A stretch of DNA of 64,000 nt. Origin: Paramoeba atlantica. Taxonomy: Eukaryota > Protista > Discosea. Positions 1-43,600 of this stretch are shown piece by piece. The translations under genes and the position numbers were made by a program. Location of the stretch: assembly GCA_977017575.1 (NCBI GenBank), contig CDRNVI010000148.1:62001-126000 (forward strand). The letters run 5' to 3'. Each line of letters opens with the position of its first letter. Position 1 is the stretch's first letter. The notes beneath the pieces were generated by a model that had not been told where the DNA came from, ran no database searches, and saw only the letters and a list, made by a program, of their open reading frames with translations.

Positions 1-3000
1 AGAGAGAGAAGAAGAAGAGAGAAGGGGGAGAGAGAGGAGGGAAGAAAGTTCTTGGGTGTTCTGTTGAGAGGGGGGAGTTCGAGAATGAGAGGTCTGTTAG
101 TCCTAAGAAAGTGAGAAATAAGGTTTTTCCTCTCTCTCTCTTCTCTCTCTCACTCCTTTCTTTTCTCTTTTTCTTCCTCTCCTTTCTCTCTCTCTTTCTC
201 TCTTCTTCTTCTCTTTCTGATCTTCTCTTTCAATGTAGATTTCAAGAGCGATTACAAAACAATTTACACAATCTTCTGGAAGTCAAGATGGTAAAATTTT
301 GATGATTTGATTTATTTATTTATTTATTTTTGATGATATTTTGATTATTATTTTTAATTTTATTTGATTCTTTTTCATTTATTTTTTCTAATATTAAATT
401 CTGAAGTAGTTTTGCTGCCTCGAAAAATGGCCAAAAATGAACTGGTTTTTTTTTCTTTATCTTTTTTTTTCTTTTCTCCTCTTTTTCTCTTTTTTGGAAT
501 TCCTGATTTTTCATTTTTTTTTCAAGGATGATTTATCTTCTCAAAAAGAATTTGGTTTGGAAAAAAAACTTTCTTTTCTCTTTCTTTTTCATTTCTCACG
601 TTTTTTCTTTTTCCCTCCTTTCCCCTTCCTCTTCTTCTCTCTTCCCTCCCTCTCTCCTCTCTTCCCCCCCTCTCTCTTCAAAACAAACAAAACAAAAAAA
701 AATTATAGAATCATTATCAGAACTTGTATTAACATTAACAGACGACCAATTATTTGACTTAAAATTTCGTTATGCTGCATTTTTGACTTTGTCTACTTAT
801 ACAACTCCTCTGGAAATGCTTGAACATCTCAGGTTTTCTTTTCTCTCTCTCTTCTTCTCTCTCTTTTCTCTTTCTTGTCTCTCTCTCCCTTCTCTTCTCT
901 TATTTCCTTGATCTCTTTTTCTGTTTTTCAAAAATGAAACTTTTACAATTTCACTGGAAATGCTTGAACACCTCAGGTTTTCTTTTCTCTCTTCTCCTCT
1001 CTCTTCTCCTTCTCTTCCTGTCTCTTTCTTTCTTCTCTCCTTTTCCTCCTTTCAACAATGGATTCTTTTTTGGCTTTATTTTCTTTTCTGGTCTCTCTCT
1101 TTCTCTCTTCTTCTTCTCTCTTTTTCTCTCTTTTGTTCTCTTTTCTAACCTATCTTTAGGGTTCGGTATTTAGCCCTGGATGGCGAACCTGCAAAAGTGG
1201 TTCTTTTTTCTCTCTCTTTTTCTCTCTCTCCTCTCTTCCTCCCATTCTCTTTTCTCTCTCTATCTCTTTTCTTTCCCCCATCTCCTTCTATTCTCCCTCT
1301 TTTTCTTGCTTTTTCATTTCTCCCTCTCCCTTTTCTCCCTCTCTTATTAAAAGTAATTTAAAAAAAACAAAAAAAAAACAGAAAGTGAAAAGATTGCGTC
1401 TGGTTTCAGTGGTCAAATTTTGGATCGATGTTCAAATTCAGGATCTTCTTTCTTCTCCAGAAGTTACTTCTGCTCTCTTCTCTTTATTGGATGGTTTGTC
1501 TTTGTTTTCCCTCTCTTTTCTTCCTCTCTTTTCTCTCTTTTTCTCTTTTCTTTCTTTTTTGTCCTGTTTTTCATATTTTTCCTCTTCTCTTTCTCTCTCT
1601 CTCTCTCTCTCCTCTCTTCCCTTTCTTTCTTTTTAGAGATTAGTGAACAACTTGGAGATTCAGGGAAATCACTTCAAAAGCTCTTCGAAACAAGATCTGC
1701 TTCTTTTGTAGAGAAGAGAGAAGAGTTAAAGAAAAGAAAGAAAGAGAGGAGGGAGAGGGTTGAATCTGGAGATTATTTGGATTTTTCGGTTTGTGAAAGA
1801 GAAAAGGGTGAGATAAAAGAAAAGAAGAGAAGAGAAGGGAAGGGAAAGGATGGGAGAAAAGAAAAGAAGAGAAGAGAAGAGAAGTAGTGAAGAAAAAATA
1901 TTGATTTAATTTCTTTTTTAGTGGGATAAAATTTCTGAATTTCAATTTGCTCTTTCGTTTACAAATTATGAATTTGAGGTCTCTTATTCTCTCTTATTCT
2001 CTCTTTTCTTTTCTCTCTCTTTTCTCCCGTTTTTCTTTTCTTTTCTCTTTTCCCTTCCTCTTCTCTCTCTTTTCTCTCTCTTATTCCCTTTTCATTCAGC
2101 TCTTCGAAACTTTAAATTCACACGAATTATTGTCTTGGAACACAAAAGAAAAAAACAAAAAATGTTTAAATATTTCGAATATGATTGGTTTATCAAATCA
2201 TTTATCTGCTTGGTTTTTTTCTTTTTTCTTCTTTTTTCTTTTTCTTTTTCTTTTTCTTTTTTCTCTCTCGTTTTTCTTTCTTTTTCTCTTCTCTTTTATT
2301 TTTTCTCACTTTCCTCATTACCAAACATTCATTTCATCTTTCTCTCTTTCTTTCTCCTGTATCTTTACTTTCTAGGGTGACGACAGAGTTAACCAAAAAA
2401 GTTCGATTAACAGAACGAATTCGTCTTCTAGAAGTATTTTTAAATATTTGTGAGGAATTTTTTGATTTAAACAATTTTTCTGGGTTTTTTCTTTTTTTCT
2501 CTTCTCTCTCTCTCTCTCTTTCCTTCACTTTCTCCTCCTTTTCTGATGGGATTTCTCTCTCTTGTTTCTTTCTCTGTTTTTAGAGCCATGGCAATTATTG
2601 CTGGTTTGAATAACGCTGCTTCTCGAAGAATGAAAAAGGTTTCTTCCAAAAAAAGAAGAGAAAGAGAAAGGGAAGAGAGAGATATTTAACAACAAAAAAG
2701 AAAATGAAGAAGAGAGAGAAAGAGAAGAGAAGAAAAAAGAGACAAATTTTTTTTCTAAACAAAAAAAATTAGACTTGGGCAGGAATTGATCCAAATTTGG
2801 CTGCAAAATTTAACAAAATTGAAGAGATTATGTCTCCTGATTGTGGATATGAAAAATATCGAAATCATATTTTGGTAATTTGTTTTTGTGATTCTTAAAT
2901 TTATTATTTGTGAATTTTGGAATGTTTTAAAAAAAGAATTATTATTAAAAAATAATTTTACTTTTCTGATCTCTTTTCCTTCTCTTCCGTAGAAATGTGT

Positions 3001-3823
3001 TCCGCCATGTTTACCATATTTGGGGATTTACTTGACAGATTTGACCTTTTTGGATGAAAGTAATAAAGACACAAAAAGTGGCGCCATTAATTTTCAGAAG
3101 AGATTATTGGTATTAATTTTCGCTCTTTTCCCCTCTCTTTCTTTTCTTTCTTTTCTTTCTTTTCTTTCTCTCTCCTTTCTTTTCTTTCTTTTTCTTTCTT
3201 TTTCTTTCTTTTCCCTTCTTTCTTCTCATTCTTTTTTCATTTAGATGTCAACAACATTACAAATGGTGAGATTGTATCAATCCGTCGATTACACTGAAAA
3301 ATATCCCCCTCCAAAAGTTCTTTCTCTCTTTCCTCTCTCTCTCTCTTTTCGATTTCTTTGTTGTGGAAAAGATTTTTAATTTGACTTTTTTTCAGTTTGA
3401 TTATGTGTTGCCTTTTTTATCTTCTCAGCCACTCCATGAAGACGAGGTTCTCTTTTTTCTCCTTTTCTTTTCTGTTTTATATTTAGCCCTCTTCTTTCTT
3501 TCTTTCTCTCCTTTCTTTTCTAATTCTTTCTATCAGTGTTACATCAAGTCACAAATTATCGAACCAAAAGACCCAGAAGAGGGAACGGGTGCTCTTTTAC
3601 AATATCTCTCCCAAGAAAGATCATTGGTCAAAGAAATGATAAAAGAAGAGAGAGAAAATGAGAAGGAGAGGGAGAAAGAGAGGGAGGAGATGTGGCAAGG
3701 AATGAAAGAAGAGATTGAACAATTAAAGGTTCGTTTTTTGTTTTGTTTTTTTTGAGATTTTTTTCTCTTGCTAATTTTTTGAAATAGACTCTTGTAAAAT
3801 CTCAGAGCGATCCACAAAAATAA
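1..3823 (+). CDS. Ras guanine nucleotide exchange factor (REM + CDC25 domains), multi-exon, 5' end outside window
   Basis: Hand-spliced exons: DLKFRYAAFLTLSTYTTPLEMLEHLR (REM), RLVSVVKFWIDVQIQD, NISNMIGLSNHLSAW, VTTELTKKVRLTERIRLLEVFLNICEEFFDLNNFSG, AMAIIAGLNNAASRRMKK, PPCLPYLGIYLTDLTFLDESN..INFQKR (CDC25 signature). Last exon TLVKSQSDPQK-TAA at 3788-3823. Confidence 0.92.
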
Positions 3824-30928: not shown

Positions 30929-33900
30929 TCAATGTTCCACTTGTTGAAGAGCAAGGAGATTACTTTTTGCTTCAGTGAGTTGTTTTTGACAATCAAAAAA
31001 GGAATTTAAGAGTTCTTCAATTGCTGTTTCTGAGTCTCGAGGTTCAGCATATCTTGAATATTGGTGACACTACAATTCTTTTATCAGAAAGAGAAGGAAA
31101 GAGAGAAAAGAAAGAAAAAGAAAAAGAAGAACCTTATCTTCCGTCAGAATGTCAATTGATTTTAGAGCAGAAGAAAATTGGAACTAAAGGGAAAAAAAGA
31201 AGAAAATCAGCAATGAAAGAAGAAGAGGAAAGAAAGAAGAAAGAAAGAAGAGGAAAAGGAAGAAAGAAAGAAGAACCTGTGGGGGAGGATGGGAATCAGA
31301 ATAACTGACACTTTGAAATGACAATGTTTCTTGAATTACTTTCGCAACCTGTTCAAAAAAAAAGTTTAAAAAAACATTCTCTCTCTCTCCTCTCTCCTTT
31401 TCTTTTCTACACATTATTCTTTTCATCATAACGAGAACAAAAAAAAAATGACCATAATCCATTTTTTGAAATTAATACAACCGAGCTGTTTGTCCTTATT
31501 TCCATCATCCAAGAAAGTCAAATCACTTAAATGAGCTCCAATATAAGGAATACAAGGCGGTTTGATTGTCTATTTTCTTCCATCAGTTTTCTTCCATCAG
31601 TTTTCTTTCATCAGTTTTCTCATCAGAAAGAGAAAAATAATAAACAATAAACAATAAAAAAGAATAAAATTTTATCTCAAAAAAAAAACTTTCAAAACAC
31701 CAAACACTAAATCCAAAATACTAAAAAGAAGAAATTGCCATAAAAAACCTTGAGATGATTTCGATACACAGCATAACTCGCAGAATGAGAGAGAATCTCA
31801 GCCATATGATCATATATCTTCTGAGAATCGGAACTAATTCGAGCCCATGTCTTAAGAAATAGTTGAAATGTTAAAACAAAAAAAATAATAATTGAAAGGT
31901 GTTTGAAGAGAAGAGAAGAGAGAAGAAAAGAGAAAAGAATATAATTCTGTTTCTTCAAACCTTTTTCATTCGCCAAAAGGCAGAATTCGTTAAACCACCA
32001 AACATCGCCATATAACTTGATATAAAACAAAATCAAAATTAGTTTTTTTTTTTAAAAGAAATCAAATTTGAAAAAAATAATATCAAGAACAACAAAGAAA
32101 CCTCGATAAGTTATTCAACTCAAACAAATGTTCGCAAAGTTTAAGAAACTTTTCCAATAATTTGACTCGATCATCAGCTCTCATCCTTTTCATAAGTTCT
32201 GAAGTCACCCTTGAAAATACCATTTTAAGAATTGTTTGGAAGCATAACAACACAAACAAGAAAAAGAAAGGAACAAACAAGTACCAAACAATAAACATTT
32301 TAAACATTTTAAAATAAGAAACATCCATCAATTAATCCAAATGACAAACAAAAGAAAAAAAGAAAAAAGAAAAAAAGAAACCAAGTAGAAATACGAGTAG
32401 AATTCGAAATCATAGCAGAAATTTTGGGACAATTTGAAGAAGTTCGTCGATTCCAAGTTAAAAGTTCTACAGATGGAATCTCAGAAAATAAATCAAATTC
32501 TTCAAAAGTGATGGATTTTGCAATTTCTGCTGGATCAAAAACATCCCACTGATATAATAAAACATTCAAAGAAAGAAGGAGAAAAAGGAACTGAGAGAAA
32601 GAAAAAGAGAAAAAAGAGAAAAAAGAGAAAGTGTCGAAGAGAGAGAGAGAGAGAGAGAGAGAAAGAAAGAAGAACTGATAGATCTGCAGGATTTCGAGAT
32701 GGTTTAAAATACATCGCTGCATCATAAAATTCTTCTTTTTTTTGCTTAAAATAACCAATCAAATTGGGAGAAATGAGTTCATCACTATCGATTTCTAAAA
32801 GAAAAAGAAATTAAAAACACTCAAGAAAAGAAAAAGAAAAATACAAAAGAAAGAAAGAAAAAAGAAAGAGAAAAAACCTTGAAAGAAAGAGGGTATTTCT
32901 TGTTCAACTGTTTTATCAAAAATCAAATCAGAAATATTGGTATCAATCCAACACTTTAATGTTTCGACAATCTCACTTTTTCTCCAGTAATTTGGTGGAA
33001 GAGTCTAAAAAAAACAAATCCAAATTAATCAGACGAGAATCTCAAAAACAAGTCATTTTGTTAAAGAAAGATAGTTTTAAAAATTTAACCAAAAGAAGAC
33101 AAACAAAACAAACAAATAAAATGAAAAAAAAGAAAAACGAAAAGAAAAAAAAAGAAAAAAGAAAAAAGAACCTTTTTCATCGGATCACCACTCCACCTCC
33201 TCCTCAACAACCTCACAACCTCAAAAGCAGTAGCAAACCTCGTATAAGTCAAAAAGAAAGCTTTCCGTATCTCAACAACATCAGGAGTATTCTCAGTCAT
33301 TGTCGCAATAACATCAGGAAGAGAAGTCAAATCAATTGCGCTCTGAGGCGGAGAAGCAAGAGCTAAATGAGGAGGAAGAATAGTCGGCCTTCTCTCCCTT
33401 CCTTCATCCCCCTTCTTGCTACTCTTATTTCGAAATCTTGACTTTTTCTTTTTTTGGTTCAAATCATCAGATGAATGAGAAACTTGAAAGTAACCTCTTG
33501 GATCTTCTCTTGGAGCAAACTTAGGAGATCTTCGAGATGTTTTTGGAGATCTTGTGATCGAATTTTTACTTAGCTCAGGAGAAATAGATCCACCATCACA
33601 ACGCATAATCGGTTCAGGACAAACAACCCCCCTTGCTGCAGAGACAGTTGTCGCATCAGAAAGAGTCACACTCGCAATCATTACAGGAGAATTAGGATGG
33701 TTTGTCATGGGGGGACTAAAATTGAGTAAAGACCGGTCTCGAATAATCGAACTTGGAGCTCCTTCTTCATCTTTTGCCGTTGAAAGAGAAGCGAAAGTTT
33801 GGTTTCGATAGGGGAACGCAATTCCTCCTCCTCCTCCTCCTCCTCCTCCTTCCTTTCCTAAAGGAGAATTGCCTTGTTGGAATTGGGGTTCAGGTGAATT

Positions 33901-36900
33901 AATCACAGATCGATTCTTATCCTTTACCTTCTTTGTCCCAGAACCTTTAAAAAATCCAAATATTTCTTCTTTTTGTCCCTCTTTTACCTTTTCTACTCCC
34001 CCCTCCTCTCCTCCTTCCTTGTCCTTCTTTTTGTCCTTCTTCTTCTCTTTTTTCTTTTCCTTTTCCTTTTCATTCTCTTTTCCTCCTTCACCTTTCCCTT
34101 TCCTTGATCTCAATGGAGATCGATTTGTAAGTCGAGAAGCAGAATTCCGGCGTCCAAGAGTTGCAACTGAATAAGATTTTGACGGTAAAGTGGGAGAACT
34201 TTCATTCATTTTGATGGACACCACAGAATCTTCTCTTTGACGAGGAGGAGAATCAATCATTGGATCATGGTGGTGTCGATTTAAAAGAATCTCGCTCCCC
34301 CCAAGATCAGGACTTGCACTCTTCCCAAGTCTCCTTTCTGAATTGGATAAAGGGGTGTTCGTTTCCGAGCTCTTTGCAAGTTCCGGAGATAAACTGCCAG
34401 GATCTAAACTCTTTCTTACATCCCTTGGAGAACTAAATCCTGGTCGAACTGGAGAAAGCATTGTTTCACGTGTTGATGAAAGTATCTCCGCTCTCTTGAC
34501 AGTTTTCCACTTTGCATCAGATGGGCCCTCTTCGCTTCCAGTAGGCGAGGGTGAGTCAACGGAGGGTGAGCCAATGGAGGGTGAGTCAATGCCAGTTTCA
34601 TTTGAATTCTTTCTTGGCACACCTCTTGAACGGGATGTTTTTCTCCGAGGAGAAAAAGAAACCATTGAAAAGAGGGGAGTTGAAGGAGAGGAACAAGGAG
34701 GAGTGGTCCTAAACCCTTCTTTCGAATTTGGAATTCGAGATTCAAAAGCTTCTAAAAGAAGACTCAAGATTGGGAGAAAATCCTAAAAAAAAAGAAGAAA
34801 ATTATCAATTATAAGCAATGAACAAAAAGCAGATTTGGAGAAATGGAGAGAGAGAGAGAAAAAGTTGACCTGAAGGTCATGGGTATCAGAAGAAAAGGGC
34901 TCTAGCAAATCAGAAACTTCAGACATCAAATTCTTCGCAGCGATTTGGATCGACAATTTTTCTTCATGAACCTGATAATCAATAATATTTTGTGAGAAAA
35001 TGAAAAAAAAAAAAAAGGGAAAGAGAAGAAAAGAAAAGAGTACTTTCATAATATGTGTTAGCAAACCAATCATTCCAACGGAAATCTGAGTCAAACCATT
35101 CCAACTTGCTTCTTCAAAATGGGAATGTAATTCTTTCAAAAAGTTTGTCAACAATTAAAAAAAATCAGATCTATTACAACTCAAAAAAGGATTAAAACCT
35201 TGAAAAACTGTGGAAAGTTCTTCACTGTTTTCACAAATCTTCGAATACAAATACACCCGTTCAGAAATCACCGAGGAAAGTTTCTCAAAACTCATCCCGA
35301 GAGGGAAGTGTTCTTTTAGATACAGGACCCAACAAGAGAAAGAGAGGGGGGGGGGGAAAGAAAGAGAAAGAGAAAGAAAGAAGAAAGAGAAAGAAAGGAG
35401 AAAAACGAAAGGTCAAAAAAAGAAAAGGTCAAAAAAGAAAAAGAGATTCCCAGAAAATCACCGCCTGCTTCAGCCACAAAAAGAAAATTCTGCGGTAACT
35501 GGTGGTGTCCCAAACAAAACGAAGGGACACCATTTCCCTTTTCGTTTTTTCGAGGTAAAAATTTTGAATTTCTGTTTTTTCAAATTTAGTTTTTGAGTAA
35601 ATTTGAAAAAAATATTAAAAATTTGTGTGGTTTTTTGGATCTGTGTTTCAAATTTTTTTCTTTCCCATTTTCAAATGAAAAATCCAAAATTAAAATAAAA
35701 ATGTTTTATTTGATTTTTTTCCTTCTTTTTCTTTTCCCAACCAACAACAGTCTCACCCTTCGTGAGTCGCAGGTAAGGTTTGGACAAAACCCATCATCGT
35801 CGGATCAAGATCGATCATCTTTTCATAAGGAGATTTTTGGAAAAATTGGATTTCCTGGATCGTTCGAGCAGCTTTCCGAAACTTAGCAAAATTGAGGAGT
35901 TTTGGATCCGAATCTGCAATCCATGTTTGTTGTTCGAGAGTCTCTGTAAAGTTGGCTAACGAAAACTTAAAGTTCGGGATTGAAGGAAGCTTCTTTTCTT
36001 CCAAAACAGAACGATAAGTGACGTAGTGGTTGGTTGGAGAAAGGAGATCATTCAACTCTTTTAAGTGTTTCACTCCTTTGTGGATCAGAGACTTATTTTC
36101 ACGAGAACTCAGCACAACAGCTTCAAAGAGGGTGAAGACACCAAAAACGTTCCTCAGGCGTCGGCAGTGTTCCATAATTTCGAGAAATTTTTTGATGATT
36201 GCAGTCTTTGGGACATACTTTTCAATTTCAACTTTCACCCATTCATTCACAGCAACAATTCGCTTTGAGATGAGAAGTTCAGATGGTTTAGATAACGCAA
36301 CTCGAGGATCAATCAACTTATACAATCGAATGTCGTAAAGAGTCCATTGCTTAGCAATCACGGAACTGCTCATATCCAATAAATCCCATTTGGTTGACTC
36401 AGGAATCACATAGATTCGCGGTTTTGTTACAGTTGCAGCGCCAGTTGTTTTTCTCTCCAGAGTTTGAATGAGATTTTGAACTTGGCTCTCTTGGAGAATC
36501 GATTTTAAGGAAGAGATAAATTTCTTTGCGTTGGCTTTGAGGTCAGGGTTGTCTCGAAAATCTTGAGGAACACAACTCACCCAAACTTTCATCAGATTAA
36601 AACATCGAGTCATTAGATTCTTCTTCTCGTCTTCAGGAGATTCTCCCTCACCATCTTCTTCACCACCAGCAGCAGCAGGGTCACTCAATGAAGAAGGAGG
36701 AGTACTAATATTTTGGAGGAGATCAACTCCTTTCAGAAACGCAGGGTAGACACAAAGGAGGTCAATCGCAAAAGACGGGTCAGGGTTCATCTTCGATAAT
36801 AAACTTCCAAGAAGTTGAGGGATCGTTCCAGCGATAATTATATTTGCTCGTAAAATCAATTCCTTATTTTCCCCCTCTAAATTTCCAAGTTCTCCCTCTT

Positions 36901-37381
36901 CACCTTCTTTTTCTTTTTCTTTTGCTTTTTCTAATTCTTTCTCTCTCTCTCTTTCTTCCTTCATTTTTGCTTCTTTCTTTGCAATCCTTTGCCCATAATC
37001 TTTATTCTCTGCTCGAAGGACATTAATTTGCTCTTTCAACTGTTCTGGATCATGAGGGATAAACGAAAGATTAATTCGATTTTCTTCTGCTAATTTCATC
37101 ACTGCAGCTGTTCGATATCCCCTCAACTTTCGTTTTAACCGAAGGACTTGTTCTGAAACAGTAGATAAAGTTTGTCTCATATGTTCATATTTCGATAAAA
37201 TTTTTGTTTGTTGTTCTTCGAGAAACGCAATTCGATCCAGCATCTCAACCTTTTCTGGGTCGACTTCTTCACCCCCCTCCCAATTTTTTACAACCTCATC
37301 ATCAAACCCAGTCACAGATTTTTCGAGTTCCGCAATCTGGCGATATAAATCACTTCCAATTTCGCTGATTGGGTGAGACAT
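30929..37381 (-). CDS. Large RasGEF with probably two REM+CDC25 modules (divergent N-terminal module, S/P-rich linker, canonical C-terminal module)
   Basis: ORF 35753-37381: coiled coil, IIAGTIPQLL..FAIDLLCVYPAF, VWVSCVPQDF, IAKQWTLYDIRLYKLI, LLNFAKFRK (divergent GEF). Downstream exons: AFFLTYTRFATAFEVV, KCWIDTN, EIAKSITFEEFDLF, NSTRISTW/VTSEL, ELNNLS, PCIPYIGAHLSDLTFLDDGN..INFKK. An in-frame GTGAGA..CAG junction (about 35757 to 35572) links the halves, but two separate genes cannot be excluded. Confidence 0.8.
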
Positions 37382-37717
37382 ATTATATTCTCTCTCTCTG
37401 ATCGATCAGCTTTCTTTTTTCTTCGCACACCCTCTCTCTCTCTCTCTCTCGCAAAAAAAAAAAAAGGAAAACCCAACAGAACACACACAAAGAAACACAA
37501 AAACACAAAAAAATCACAGCCAAAAAAAAACAAAACGCTTTTTTCGAAACAACAGTAAAAAAAGACTCGAAATCGAAAATAAAGTACAACGAAAAAAAGA
37601 GTGCTTTTTATTATTTCTTTTGAGCGAAACAAACAAATGAGTCGAAAGAAAATGAGGAGGGGGGAGAAAGGGAGAGAGAGAGAGAGAGAGAGAATGTGTT
37701 GGTTTGCGATGAAAAAA

Positions 37718-39916
37718 TTAATTGGTTACAGTGAAAGTCCCTGTGAAAATCACAATCGGACCGTCCCGCCTTTCAGTGACCGACAAGAGGGTACCGAAAT
37801 TGTGTCCATCTTTATGACGAGCAGTCACAATTCGTCCTTTACCGACGACCACAGATTCAGAAGCTTTCTTCTTTCCGTCTGCATAATTTTTGAGAAGTTT
37901 TCCGTGGATATTGTGAATTTCACCGCTGGGAATGAGCTCATTCACATCTCGACCAATCAATTCTTTGTCACTGAACCCAAACAGCTCTTGCGCTGGTTTG
38001 TTGAAAGCACGAACAATAGCATCGGAAGTAATAACACAAGCAGGGATAAGTAATTGGTCAATAACGTCGGTCTGTTGCTTCAAGACAGCAGAGTCGGCCA
38101 CAGAACGATCTTGTTTTGAAAGGACTTGGATAATTCCAGTAAAGATCTTGTCGCCAGATTTTTCAGCAGCCAGTGTCACGGAAAGCATGCACTCTAATTT
38201 GTTTCCATATCGATCTTGTCCAGTCACATTTCGACCTTTCCCAACAACACTGGAACTTCCTCCAGGTCCTCTCCCTTGTCCAGTTTTCGCGAAATTGGAA
38301 ACATAAGAGGTGTGGTTGTCGTATGTCTCACCAGGAGGGATCAACATTCGGACATTGTGGCCAAGAATTTCAGAAATAGTATATCCGAAAACCTCACGAG
38401 CAGCCCCGTTCATCTCCTGAACGATTCCTTGTTCGTCAATAATCAATGCAGGGATCACCAAAGTCGAGATAACATCTCTCTGAGTCTGCAATACCGTCCC
38501 TCCACTAACTTTTTCTTGTGATTTAAATTGAAGGATGTAATATGGCGTTCCATCAATTTCACGATGAGAAAACTCAACAATCTTCGCAATAAGAGTACTC
38601 TTCTTAGTGTAACAAATCACATCTCGAGAGTTGTTGACTAACAATCCTCCTCTGATTCCACGAAGAGTCCCAACATAATCTGAGAGCAAATCTTCCCCAG
38701 TTGTACTGGAGATAGCAGGGCAAATAACAGATGCGGAGACTCCAAGCAAGGAGCCTGCGTCGTGCAAAAACGCCTCATACGACTTAGGGTTCGAGTACTG
38801 AATAACTCCGTCGGTATTGACCACGACCACAGGGTCTGGGTAACGATCAAAAGCGCTGAAAAGAGGCTGCAAATCCTTTACTTGGACGCTACCTCCAACT
38901 CCTCGCTCGCCACCTTGAATTTCTTGGACGATCGCAGTAAAAGTCACATCGGTTTCAGAAAGCGACAACCACACATCAAAGAGTTTGCCTTCTTTCGACT
39001 TGGCAACCACTTTTCGGCCTTTCCCAATAATTCGACTGTTTCCTTCACGACGATATCTCCTAAGGTACCGACTATGATTTTTAGCATCATCTTCGTTCAT
39101 TAACATCCTCACATTACGTCCAATAACTTCCTCTCGATCAAATCCAAACATATCCTCAGCCGACGCATTAAAAAATTGAATCGTTCCTTTTCGATCCGCA
39201 ACAATCACACCATCAACAAAATTTTCCAAAACACCAAAATCTTCTCCTGAATCAGACTCAGATTTTTTTGACTTGGAGGACGATGACTTGGAGGATGACT
39301 TTCCCTTCTTCTTCCTTCGAGCCGAAAAGACTGTCAATTTGACTCTTCCTTTTCTGGCAGCTGTAAGAACGGCTTGAATATCCTCATTGTTTCGCAAAGT
39401 CACCATATCCCCATCTTCATCTCGATACTTTGCAGAATAACCAGAGCCAAACTCTTTCGCAAGTTTCGATGAGAAGGAGTCAAAAGTTTCATTGGAACTT
39501 AAAAGGAGTGTTCGAATTTCATCTTTGAAAACACACTTGACTCTGAGATTTCCTGAACTACTGCTGCTGCTGCTTGGCGCGGCTGAGTGACCCGCCTGTG
39601 ATGATCCGTGCTGCGAGCCTGAGTCTTCCGAGCCATCGTGGCTCTGTGATGCTTGCTTTGTTCCTCGAAGGGTCGCAACTTTTCGAAGAATCTTTTTTCT
39701 ATGACCCATTCGTTCGATTGGGATCGCAATCAGATCGTCTTCATCAATATCAGCGAGCATTTCACCGTCCACCTCGTTGAAGAAGAAAACATCACGATAT
39801 TGAGAAAGGTTAATTGAATTTAACCAAAGACCGACTTCAACAACATCCCAATCGGCGATGTTCTTGTTTTTGATGAAGTCCAAACTATCTTTTCCATCCT
39901 TCTTTCCTTTGAACAT
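37718..39916 (-). CDS. Intronless SAM - PB1 - PAS x4 protein (FixL-type heme-PAS signatures, no catalytic output domain)
   Basis: SAM: WDVVEVGLWLNSINLSQYRDVF..VDGEML..MGHRKKIL. PB1: RVKCVFKDEIR..KYRDEDGDMVTL. PAS1: DGVIVADRKGTIQFFNASAEDMFGF..IGRNVRMLM..NHSRYLRRY..IIGKGR. PAS3 and PAS4 have the same H..Y/L and VVGKGR; PAS2 is degenerate. Confidence 0.92.
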   Translation of the reverse strand: MFKGKKDGKDSLDFIKNKNIADWDVVEVGLWLNSINLSQYRDVFFFNEVDGEMLADIDEDDLIAIPIERMGHRKKILRKVATLRGTKQASQSHDGSEDSGSQHGSSQAGHSAAPSSSSSSSGNLRVKCVFKDEIRTLLLSSNETFDSFSSKLAKEFGSGYSAKYRDEDGDMVTLRNNEDIQAVLTAARKGRVKLTVFSARRKKKGKSSSKSSSSKSKKSESDSGEDFGVLENFVDGVIVADRKGTIQFFNASAEDMFGFDREEVIGRNVRMLMNEDDAKNHSRYLRRYRREGNSRIIGKGRKVVAKSKEGKLFDVWLSLSETDVTFTAIVQEIQGGERGVGGSVQVKDLQPLFSAFDRYPDPVVVVNTDGVIQYSNPKSYEAFLHDAGSLLGVSASVICPAISSTTGEDLLSDYVGTLRGIRGGLLVNNSRDVICYTKKSTLIAKIVEFSHREIDGTPYYILQFKSQEKVSGGTVLQTQRDVISTLVIPALIIDEQGIVQEMNGAAREVFGYTISEILGHNVRMLIPPGETYDNHTSYVSNFAKTGQGRGPGGSSSVVGKGRNVTGQDRYGNKLECMLSVTLAAEKSGDKIFTGIIQVLSKQDRSVADSAVLKQQTDVIDQLLIPACVITSDAIVRAFNKPAQELFGFSDKELIGRDVNELIPSGEIHNIHGKLLKNYADGKKKASESVVVGKGRIVTARHKDGHNFGTLLSVTERRDGPIVIFTGTFTVTN

Positions 39917-40628
39917 GGCGAGAAACCAAACCAACAAAGAGAAACCAAAACCAAAAACGAAAAAACCAAAAACCAAACAAAAAAAAAATAATTGTTTGTT
40001 CCAACGACGAAAAAAATTCGATTTTTTTTGAAATAATTCGAATTTTTATTTTCGAGTATTTTTAATCAAATAAATTATTACAAATTGAGAACAAAACCGC
40101 AAATTGCTCGATTCGTACTGAAAAAGATGACGTCAATGTATTGGACCAACTGCTGTGACAACATTTGCTCGGAAGAAGAAAGAGGGTTCGTCCCTCCCTC
40201 CACACCAATTCTTCAGACACCAAACACAAAACAAAACAAAATTTAGAAAGAAAAAAAACAAACACAATCCAAATTGGTCCCCCAATGAGCTTTTTTATCT
40301 TTTTTTTTGGGGGTTCCCTTTCGAACATTTGATTGAGCACAAATATTTCAAGAACAAAAATTTCCTTTGTCAAAACTTTATTTTGGTAGCTTCTTTTATT
40401 TCTTGATTCATCATCGATCTTGAAACGGCAAAATTTTAGAGAAAAAAGGATTCCATTTTTGGAAATCATCACAGTTTTTAAGAACATAGCAAAAAGTCGA
40501 ACCAAGCTCAATCACCGTATCAAAAAATCCTTTTTTGTTGTGTTTTTTGGTTGCATTTTTTTTTTCTTTTCCTCTCTCCTTCCTCTCTTCTCTCTTCTTT
40601 TCCATGAACACGTCTGAGAAAAAAGAGA

Positions 40629-43600
40629 ATGGCTGACCCCCTTCTTGCCTACTCCTTTCGAAAGGGTGTTTTCTTTTTTATGTTTGGGTGGTTGGTGTAC
40701 AGTTTGCTTTCTGTCTCGAGAGAGCATGAGATTCTTGATCCTTATTTTGTTCTGTCTTGGGGTGTGGTCATTTTGGCTTTTGGACAATCTCTTGAAAGTG
40801 AAAGAGATTTTGTTCCTTTTCAAGTTTTTTATGGTATTGCGTGGTGTGTTTCATCCATCTCTTTTGTTTTCTTTTGGTATTTTCTTATCGCTCACAGTTT
40901 CGAAACGAGGTAACTTTTTCTTCCATTCATCCCCCTTCCTTCCCTTTCATTCTTTTTGATCTTTTTTTTTTTTTGTTTTCACAGTGATTGTTGTTCTGAT
41001 GCTGTGTTATGGATTTCTCGAACCATTACTTTTCTTTCACCTCTTTTCTTTTTGCTGATCGACATCATTCTTTCAACGAAAGAGATCTGCATTGCCTTTC
41101 AGTTGTTCCCACAAGTTTTCTTTTCCTTTCATTTTTTATTTTTTATTTTTTATTTTTTTATTTTTGTCAATTATTTTTCCTTGAAACTTTCTTCTGACCC
41201 AGAAAATATTTGTGTAGTTTCGTTTTTTTCGCCCTCTTTTCTCCATTTTGATGAGTTGGTTGATTTTTTTTGCTGAAGAAGCTTTCAACTCTCCCTTTAC
41301 CACTCATTTTTCATTAAACGTTGCCCCGTTTTTGACCATCACCATGATTTCTTCAACTCTATCTGCTTTGGGCCTTTATATTTTTCTGAATCAAGTGAGT
41401 CCTCGACATGTTCTTGAACGTTCATCTTCTCGGGAGCGTCTTCTTCCTTCTGAAAAAGAATTGGTGACAGAAGGAAAGGAGGACATGATGGGTCTTTCCT
41501 CAAGTTGAATATTTTTTCCCTTTCTCTGTTCTTTTTTCGTCAATCGATCTTTATTTTAACCAAACTTAATTCCAGGTGAACCAATCTCCACTGCAACTGT
41601 TTATTCTTCTGGTGGTTTTGGAACAATAGAGTATCATGGTTTTCCTTTCCTTTTGAATTTTTTTATTATTAGTATTCAGTCCTCTAATTTATTTTGTGCC
41701 TTCAGATGAAAAGATGCCCAGGAGTGCGCTCATCTCTTCCACATCCTCATCTCCAAAATATACTTCAACTAAAACAAATTCTTCTTCGCCCACCACACAC
41801 GACAATCCTTCATCTCAACAGCATCTCCCAAAACATCCATCAACACCTTCAAATTACTATCCAATCCCATCCGCTTCACCACCACCATCATCATCACCAT
41901 CAATCCAATCACCTCTTTTGACAGCTCCTGTTTCTCCTTCTTTTTCTCGATCACATTCACACCCAATACCATCTCCATCCGCCGTCTCTCCATTCCCAAT
42001 GGTCATTGTATCATCTTCATCATCATCCACACTAAATGACCCTCCTGAATTGACTCTTCACCAATCGAATCCAAATCTTCAATCTGAGGTCAAGGCTCTC
42101 CTCCGGAAAAAGAGAGGACGATCATCAACACTAACTGAGGTGTTTTATTGTGTTTTTTTTTTGACCCATATTTTGATTCTTTATTTTCTTTTTAACCTCT
42201 CCTTTTTCTCAGACTTTTGATAATATGCTGAGTGGATCTGAATTAGAACCCCGTCTTGAAAATTCGTTTGGGTTTTCTTTTTTTTTCTTTCACCTCACCA
42301 CTACAACAACTTATTTTTGTTCTTTAGGACTCCAGGAAGGAGTTCTTCAAGTACCGATGAATTTCCTCCACTGATTTTCGAGTCAAAATTGGAAGAAACT
42401 TATTTACCCATTCCCCCCCAACATACAGATCGATATTCAACTTTCATCGAGGTCAGAGGCATTTTTTAATCTTTCTTCTCATTTTAAAAATTCTCATCGT
42501 TATGGTGGATAGGAGCTTCGTGACTCTCAGTCAAAACTTGTATTTGATGTTTACACACTTATATTTAATCAGGTTATTTCTCTTTTTTTATTTTTCTTTC
42601 TCTCTCTGGGATTCATTGTCTTATTTTTTTTGCGATAGACACCAACAGAAGATCCTGAGGTGATTGCGAGACATGAACAATTGATGAATTCTCTCATTGT
42701 GGTCTTCGAGGTTTACTTTCTTTTTTTTTTCTTGGTTTGTTCATCCTATTGTCGTTCGTTCCCTCTCAATTCTTGTGTAGGCTGACCATAAATCACCTCT
42801 TCTTCTCCAATCCTTTGTTGAGTATGAACTTCTATCATGGTTCTTTTTTTCACTTTTGTCTGGTTCTTGATGTGTTTTTTCGATCCCACTGATAAGTTTC
42901 TTTCCACAGCGAGATGAAAGCCATGTTATTTCGCGAAGAAAGGTATTTTTTTTACCAAAAAAATTACTTTTCTTTTGGCTTCTGATAATAATTTGATTTT
43001 TTTTTTTTAAATTAAGTTTATCCGGTCGATTATTTCAAAAATACAATCGATATGTAAGTTCAGATTACATTGAACTTGTTCTTTTCTCTTCGATTCAATC
43101 TGTACTTTCAGAACCTAAACTTGACCCCACTCTTGGTAAAAAAAAATTAAGTTTCTTCACCCAGAATTGGATATGAATTTGGAATGACTTTTCTTTTGGT
43201 CAGATGAAGGGGAAAGATTGACAAGAAAAACAAAACACCTCGTTCGATCGATCATTGCAACGCAAATTCCTGCACCAATCCAGGTTTGATCATCTCCTTT
43301 TTGCTCTGTCTTTCCTTTTTTTTTTTTGGTTGAAATTTGGTTTTAGTCAACTTGTGCTTATCTTGCTTCTCGAGTGACAAGTCTTTTTCCTGAGGAGAGC
43401 ACCTCTCTTGTTCCTCAATGTCTCGCATCTTTTATGTTCCTTCATCTTTATTGCCCAGCTGTAGTCTTTCCAGAACGTTTTGGTTTGGTGGGTTTGAACA
43501 TCTCAGATGAGGTTCCAAAACAAAGAAGAGTCTCTTTTTTTTGTTTCAACTAACTTGATATTTCATCAAGGCAAGAGGAAAACTTGTTTTATTGTCGAAG

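Follow-up and report, generated by a model that had tools for sequence, protein, structure and literature searches.

A gene of the amoeba Paramoeba atlantica raises the question of what a eukaryotic protein may sense, and how it may signal, when four tandem PAS domains, three of them akin to that of the bacterial heme sensor FixL, are joined to SAM and PB1 domains and to no enzyme. The gene lies on the minus strand of a window of 64,000 nucleotides (contig CDRNVI010000148.1, positions 62,001 to 126,000 of the forward strand; positions below are those of the window unless another contig is named), where 37718-39916 translates as a single uninterrupted open reading frame of 732 codons plus stop, starting with the ATG at 39916-39914. 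Our reading, which we hold with slightly better than even confidence from sequence and predicted structure, is that the product is a heme-based gas or redox sensor whose output would consist in the assembly or recruitment of proteins. To our knowledge, the bacterial heme-PAS gas sensors are well understood and act in every case on an enzymatic or DNA-binding output domain, few direct heme-based O2 sensors exist in eukaryotes, and no protein joining SAM, PB1 and PAS has been characterised.

The open frame begins with a TTG at 39976, has its first ATG at 39916 and ends with the stop at 37718, and both the N-terminus and the length of the resulting 732-residue protein match those of 20 homologs in an alignment. 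Pfam recognized SAM_1 (residues 22-84, 70.8 bits; SAM_2, 61.6 bits), PB1 (residues 124-198, 47.8 bits) and PAS (132.6 bits in three stretches), while a profile derived from PAS1 located four PAS units, at residues 225-335, 352-461, 478-601 and 614-729. An AlphaFold2 model built from a 21-sequence alignment displayed six folded domains, with a mean predicted local distance difference test score (pLDDT) of 76 and a predicted template-modelling score (pTM) of 0.36, a value that leaves the relative placement of the domains undefined. The model has disordered linkers at residues 87-121 and 201-226; the second is rich in Lys and Ser, a richness kept across the homologs, and could be a nuclear-localisation or membrane-binding patch, although this is only a guess. 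In the 732-residue protein the Pfam scan found no kinase, GGDEF, EAL, cyclase, phosphodiesterase or DNA-binding family, and neither the Ser/Thr kinase of PASK nor the basic helix-loop-helix (bHLH) domain of bHLH-PAS factors. The SAM-PB1-4xPAS architecture read in the initial annotation is thus supported by Pfam, the PAS1 profile and the AlphaFold2 model, and the lack of an enzymatic output domain by the Pfam scan. An artefact or a pseudogene was ruled out by the intact frame, the domain-wise conservation and a colinear transcript-like contig.

The case for a sensor is carried by the PAS domains. When the whole protein was searched against solved structures, its best relatives were the FixL heme domain 1dp6 and DosP. 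Using phmmer, the best solved-structure match of PAS1 was the B. japonicum FixL heme domain (1dp6, E 6.9e-17), in an ungapped alignment of 95 residues (229-323). The same structure was the best solved match for PAS3 alone (E 4.7e-12, with a 7-residue gap in FixL) and for PAS4 alone (E 1.2e-11), and PAS2 searched alone against the PDB gave no FixL match. Foldseek placed single PAS units on the FixL heme domain 1d06 with a root-mean-square deviation of 1.2 Å over 111 columns at 37% identity, and the PAS array on PpsR (4hh2, the top match) and DosP. Against the NCBIfam FixL model NF041777 the protein scored 194 bits, the cut-off being 850, and this score came from the PAS stretches only.

The likeness extends to the residues that matter in FixL. 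The proximal His of FixL (motif RSRHDSY) aligned with H281 in PAS1, H535 in PAS3 and H671 in PAS4, and the Arg of its IIGIGR motif with R301, R562 and R695, as the initial annotation had claimed for these three domains. Its statement that PAS2 lacks both residues holds for the His, which is Gly in all four-PAS members of the family, and fails for the Arg: the strand-G Arg (the site of B. japonicum FixL Arg220) is present in PAS2 as R431 and is nearly invariant among the homologs. In FixL this strand-G Arg contacts bound O2 or a propionate, and the helix-F Arg (Arg206 in B. japonicum, Arg200 in S. meliloti) binds the heme 6-propionate. The latter site is R287 in PAS1 and is kept in 18/18 four-PAS members; its equivalent in S. 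meliloti, R200, is required for signal transmission (PMC10765370). The family includes two-, three- and four-PAS forms. Nearly all of the 18 four-PAS homologs retain the His and the G.GR Arg in PAS1, PAS3 and PAS4, and the two- and three-PAS forms have both in every PAS unit. In the ungapped alignment, with FixL residues numbered by counting from His200, PAS1 is identical to FixL at Val188, Leu191, Met192, Tyr203, Arg206, Tyr207, Ile215, Ile216 and Leu236, nine sites that we take to be heme-pocket residues, as PMC10765370 confirms in part; at the FixL His214 site it has Arg. Among 49 columns conserved to at least 80% in 15 bacterial FixL-like PAS domains, PAS1 kept 33, PAS3 27, PAS4 25 and PAS2 12. 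Judged by fold, similarity, His and strand-G Arg, PAS1, PAS3 and PAS4 are assigned to the FixL/DosP type.

The domains through which a signal could leave the protein lie at the N-terminus. The PB1 domain has a beta-1 Lys (K127) together with an acidic OPCA-like motif, YRDEDGDMV (164-172), and K127, D166, G169 and D170 are invariant across 21 homologs in the alignment, which agrees with the annotated combination of a basic Lys and an acidic motif. Having both interaction motifs, it is predicted to be a PB1 of the two-faced type, and it shares the Lys and the acidic motif with p62/SQSTM1, plant ARF/Aux-IAA and TFG. The SAM domain, a helical bundle over residues 13-85 in the AlphaFold2 model, belongs with one other domain to the two best conserved in the family (mean identity 0.69); among solved structures it is closest to the SAM domains of Caskin-1, Shank2/3, ANKS1B and DGK-delta. 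In this it resembles self-associating SAM domains, among them the polymer-forming ones of Shank3, Caskin-1, DGK-delta and tankyrase, and this resemblance is the sole hint of head-to-tail polymerisation.

Classical PB1 genes are few in the P. atlantica genome: a p62-like PB1+UBA open reading frame, one other, and two SAM-PB1-PAS paralogs. The p62-like frame (G000:C158:110000-111409; L012 1000-2409, minus strand) encodes 469 residues, with PB1 at the N-terminus and a weak UBA-like match at the C-terminus; it resembles a p62/NBR1-type autophagy receptor and is a possible PB1 partner. About 24 copies of an open reading frame of some 330 residues were also found, on contigs C149, C177, C143 and C144 (e.g. 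L014 1172-2149, plus strand), whose N-terminus matches Pfam PB1 positions 22-66 at 24-28 bits. They form an expanded family with a PB1-like start and a body otherwise without assignment.

A lead on the output comes from relatives in other organisms. One of them (P0144; L018 1557-4262, plus strand) joins in a single open reading frame a RasGAP, present as its C-terminal half (51.6 bits), to a START-like region followed by SAM, PB1 and a pair of FixL-like PAS domains; another (P0111; L019 422-2297, plus strand) is a RasGEF-SAM-PB1 protein without PAS, with its RasGEF split by an intron. Since these relatives are fused to RasGAP or RasGEF, Ras signalling, as a hypothesis from domain fusion, would be a more specific lead than the mitogen-activated protein kinase (MAPK) scaffolds suggested initially. 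Within the window, a RasGEF gene (RasGEF_N plus RasGEF; 35753-37381, minus strand) adjoins the sensor gene, a weak RasGAP match (43350-43511, plus strand; 29.2 bits) lies 3.4 kb upstream of it, and further RasGEF matches lie at 2585-3103 and 31459-32527. The adjacency to a RasGEF could be local chance, given that the P. atlantica genome has about 30 RasGEF loci, locally clustered, three of them in the window.

Put together, the protein would be a cytosolic sensor in which PAS1, PAS3 and PAS4 most likely hold heme b on the helix-F His, like FixL and DosP. These units would bind a diatomic gas, O2 being the likeliest candidate, since all three have retained a distal Arg of the FixL type. A ligand-dependent change in the PAS array would then be relayed through protein contacts of SAM and PB1, a relay suggested by the lack of a catalytic domain; such contacts could be self-association, or the recruitment or release of partners with a matching SAM or PB1. 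Among the candidate outputs, the most specific would be control of RasGAP or RasGEF, and hence motility or feeding responses to oxygen. The data show the architecture, the homology, the key residues, the range of the family, the single origin of its PAS block and probable transcription; heme binding, the ligand, oligomerisation and the Ras link are all steps that we infer.

Several observations weigh against this proposal. In PAS3 and PAS4 the FixL Arg206 site is Asn, as it mostly is among the four-PAS members, and the FG loop, which in FixL moves upon ligand binding, carries extra residues (about 7-8 in PAS3 and 4-5 in PAS4), so that heme binding or coupling in these two domains may differ. 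The FixL Ile218 is replaced by Lys in PAS1, PAS3 and PAS4 (GKGR). A complex prediction with two copies of PB1 (residues 118-202) returned no answer (score 0.00), an outcome that neither favours nor disfavours self-association. A search of the P. atlantica genome for a RasGEF or RasGAP bearing SAM and PB1 found none, and a conserved Ras-regulator neighbourhood was discarded, as it is not kept in the contig of a 70%-identical ortholog (L011). The sequencing run that supplies a contig over the gene (X1, see below) is only guessed to be RNA. Finally, 40% of the sequences in the FixL/DosP cluster (cluster 3, Xing et al. 2023) are without His (PMC10468136), and for this reason membership of the cluster alone is no proof of heme binding.

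One alternative is that the PAS domains no longer bind heme and act on another small ligand or as interaction modules, the His and Arg having a structural or other-ligand role. Some eukaryotic PASK PAS domains belong to the FixL/DosP cluster, and eukaryotic members of that cluster such as PASK have lost heme binding (PMC10468136); moreover, PAS2 of the same protein lacks the His yet is conserved, and the FG-loop insertions and the Ile-to-Lys change depart from FixL. We nevertheless consider this alternative rather unlikely, as the His is kept in three domains in homologs down to 26-37% identity and in all PAS units of the two- and three-PAS forms, and the FixL-conserved columns that PAS1 retains include hydrophobic pocket residues. 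It is also conceivable, if distinctly unlikely, that the PAS domains bind heme and report on the cell's heme supply or redox state (through Fe(III)/Fe(II) or a thiol/heme ligand switch) and not on a gas. PpsR and certain eukaryotic PAS proteins have been proposed to take heme as a reversible ligand, and PpsR, which regulates without an enzyme domain, supplies with its PAS array the top multi-domain structural match; three heme sites per chain could give a graded read-out of heme supply, and the lack of the FixL propionate-binding Arg in PAS3 and PAS4 could lower their affinity for heme. Gas sensing fits better with the O2-stabilising distal Arg kept in all heme-type domains and with PAS1, which keeps nearly the entire pocket that in FixL holds heme permanently. 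A non-signalling hemoprotein, serving heme storage or buffering or NO/O2 scavenging while SAM and PB1 merely concentrate the protein, would suit three potential heme sites per chain, the lack of an output enzyme and the high depth of the X1 contig, but it is very improbable, because the FixL signalling residues Arg287 and Arg301, the conserved domain order and the RasGAP and RasGEF fusions of relatives fit signalling better than storage.

The gene belongs to a sizeable family. By word search, its domain set recurred in 22 further proteins (26-70% identity), and an exhaustive search with the SAM-PB1 part (residues 12-200) gave 117 representatives at E <=1e-10. Among the best 150 SAM-PB1 matches, at least 36 clusters (50% identity) carry FixL-like PAS; for the 28 matches that span SAM and PB1 together, PAS was present in 27 and PB1 was recognized by Pfam in 26. 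In these searches of protein clusters the SAM-PB1 module thus occurs almost only with this FixL-like PAS block, the exceptions being the RasGAP and RasGEF fusions P0144 and P0111. A feature search of the ESM Atlas yielded nothing beyond generic clusters with a single PAS. Members come from Paramoeba aestuarina, P. atlantica, Pellita catalonica and Mayorella sp. (Amoebozoa, Discosea), Echinamoeba exundans (Amoebozoa, Tubulinea), the amoeba Stygamoeba regulata and the heterolobosean Pharyngomonas kirbyi. A literature search found no paper joining the names SAM, PB1 and PAS, or FixL or heme-PAS with amoebae, and no member of the family is characterised in the literature found. The proteins from the Pharyngomonas kirbyi transcriptome (P0099 and P0132) are of the form SAM-PB1-PASx3 and are nested, domain by domain, in the amoebozoan family tree; their presence there points to transfer from one eukaryote to another, to very ancient ancestry followed by losses, or to contamination. 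A further SAM-PB1-PAS member (P0037/P0018) is filed under the green alga 'Chloroparvula japonica' (MMETSP1310) and is probably an amoeba contaminant of the algal culture.

Regarding the origin of the PAS block, the closest relatives of PAS1 outside the family are bacterial histidine kinases of the FixL type, about 500 residues long (41-43% identity, 147-163 bits). All 38 amoeba domains formed one clade (99/90) when 63 PAS domains were placed in a tree, and in a wider tree, with 25 bacterial and chytrid PAS domains as outgroup, so did 55/55 SAM-PB1-PAS domains, those of Pharyngomonas and of the RasGAP fusion included (100/98); with 115 columns only, these trees leave the deeper branching order unsettled. 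The domains cluster by position, in keeping with a conserved multi-domain order, and in the four-PAS form PAS3 pairs with PAS4 (97/87). The stem branch that leads to PAS2, within the family clade, is very long (2.4-2.6). Given one clade for all family PAS domains beside the bacterial FixL-type kinases, the block is bacterial in ancestry, was acquired once and long ago, and was duplicated inside eukaryotes; in the four-PAS form the last unit was duplicated and the His of PAS2 lost. The bacterial origin suggested in the initial annotation is therefore upheld. Four metagenomic bacterial proteins (P0048-P0051), FixL-type kinases of about 500 residues, have two tandem PAS domains, both with the His and IGIGR, and are predicted to be double heme-PAS kinases. 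A histidine kinase of 1184 residues from the chytrid Clydaea vesicula (P0029) has one FixL-like PAS in which the His is kept and GLGK replaces G.GR; since this domain groups with bacterial ones in the tree, it looks like a separate acquisition.

The intronless state of the gene had been taken as a possible sign of recent assembly, a view that did not hold. The 45.7 Mb genome contains two further copies, at C139:165072-167635 (47% identity) and C156:286267-288940 (42%), and since both group with the divergent P. aestuarina protein P0020, they represent an old second subfamily. Each is broken into several blocks in its N-terminal half and is uninterrupted from an intron in PAS1 to the stop. This T-rich intron occupies the identical site in both paralogs, in the PAS1 FG loop just before REGNS, and is absent from the window gene. 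In another organism, the ortholog P0003, which is 70% identical and lies on a metagenomic contig of 211 kb, likewise consists of a single open reading frame of 2196 nucleotides. With paralogs that share an intron and an intronless ortholog at 70% identity, the intronless state is most simply read as an intron loss that is old and common to the orthologs. Recent transfer or recent assembly as its cause was ruled out by the same paralog introns and intronless ortholog and by the age and width of the family, whose architecture spans several orders of Amoebozoa and a heterolobosean.

The window gene is probably transcribed. In run X1 (2015) a contig of 2312 nucleotides is colinear with 37705-39931 without gaps; a separate contig covers the neighbouring RasGEF gene, and none covers the intergenic 39944-40667. 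Contigs from X3 and X5, runs of unrecorded kind that look DNA-like, cover the intergenic stretch from 40002 on. The X1 pattern, with genes covered and the intergenic gap uncovered, unlike in X3 and X5, fits a transcriptome, and homologs are also found in MMETSP and EukProt transcriptomes. This evidence consists of contigs only and gives neither transcript ends nor levels; the depth of the X1 contig over the gene is high, but depth cannot rank genes. In a metatranscriptome of 2025 (X2), fragments about 95% identical to the gene match 37796-38419 and 39661-39873, and the differences are for the most part spaced as synonymous changes would be; that environmental sample therefore contains a close relative of the gene, which is probably expressed. 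The coordinates of the gene, its domains and the paralog intron are given in Table 1.

Table 1. Position of the sensor gene and its domains in the window, and of the intron shared by its two paralogs
Feature	Position	Strand	Basis
Complete intronless coding sequence, SAM-PB1-PAS1-PAS2-PAS3-PAS4	37718..39916	-	Open reading frame, homolog agreement, colinear X1 contig
SAM domain, residues 22-84	39665..39853	-	Pfam SAM_1 70.8 bits
PB1 domain, residues 124-198	39323..39547	-	Pfam PB1 47.8 bits; K127 + YRDEDGDMV (164-172)
Lys/Ser-rich disordered linker, residues 201-226, RRKKKGKSSSKSSSSKSKKSES...	39239..39316	-	pLDDT <50 over 201-226
PAS1, residues 227-335, His281/Arg287/Arg301, most FixL-like unit	38912..39238	-	phmmer vs 1dp6, Foldseek vs 1d06
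PAS2, residues 345-466, divergent, Gly at His site, R431 kept	38519..38884	-	PAS1 profile 18 bits; PAS fold in model
PAS3, residues 476-602, His535/Arg562	38111..38491	-	phmmer vs 1dp6, residue table
PAS4, residues 612-730, His671/Arg695	37727..38083	-	phmmer vs 1dp6, residue table
Shared paralog PAS1 intron	G000:C139:166103-166232; G000:C156:287495-287551		

Compared with known systems, the protein shares with FixL (1dp6, 1d06) and E. coli DosP the PAS fold, the helix-F His and the strand-G Arg of PAS1, PAS3 and PAS4, and in PAS1 also the FixL Arg206 and most pocket residues. It differs from them in having no histidine kinase, GGDEF or EAL output, in its four tandem PAS domains, one of them without the His, in the N-terminal SAM and PB1, and in its eukaryotic host. 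PpsR/CrtJ (4hh2) likewise combines several PAS domains with no enzyme domain and acts via protein contacts; unlike the amoeba protein, however, it ends in a helix-turn-helix, binds DNA and is without SAM or PB1, and the identity is only 12-15%. The FixL-like heme-PAS proteins (FXL) of Chlamydomonas reinhardtii reportedly bind heme and O2. They indicate that a FixL-type heme-PAS can be functional in a eukaryote, albeit in another lineage and in a domain context that is not known to include SAM-PB1.

In this family, then, a FixL-type module has been multiplied and joined to eukaryotic oligomerisation domains, with a scaffold in place of the enzyme, and it is found in several orders of amoebae, including a genus with fish-gill parasites, as well as in a heterolobosean. 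A bolder proposal, unlikely in its full form, is that the family is a direct receptor of O2 (or NO/CO) in lobose amoebae, a multi-heme array that would switch SAM/PB1 assembly and thereby local Ras-regulator activity, steering aerotaxis or feeding without a second-messenger enzyme. If true, this would be a heme sensor with a purely assembly-based output, built by a eukaryote from an anciently acquired bacterial FixL module. Should heme and gas binding be borne out, the family would lend itself to studying how PAS domains pass on a signal without an enzyme and would include a candidate oxygen receptor for amoeboid behaviour; it would also show clearly how an ancient sensor domain of bacteria was domesticated as part of a eukaryotic scaffold, with Ras regulators as a testable output.

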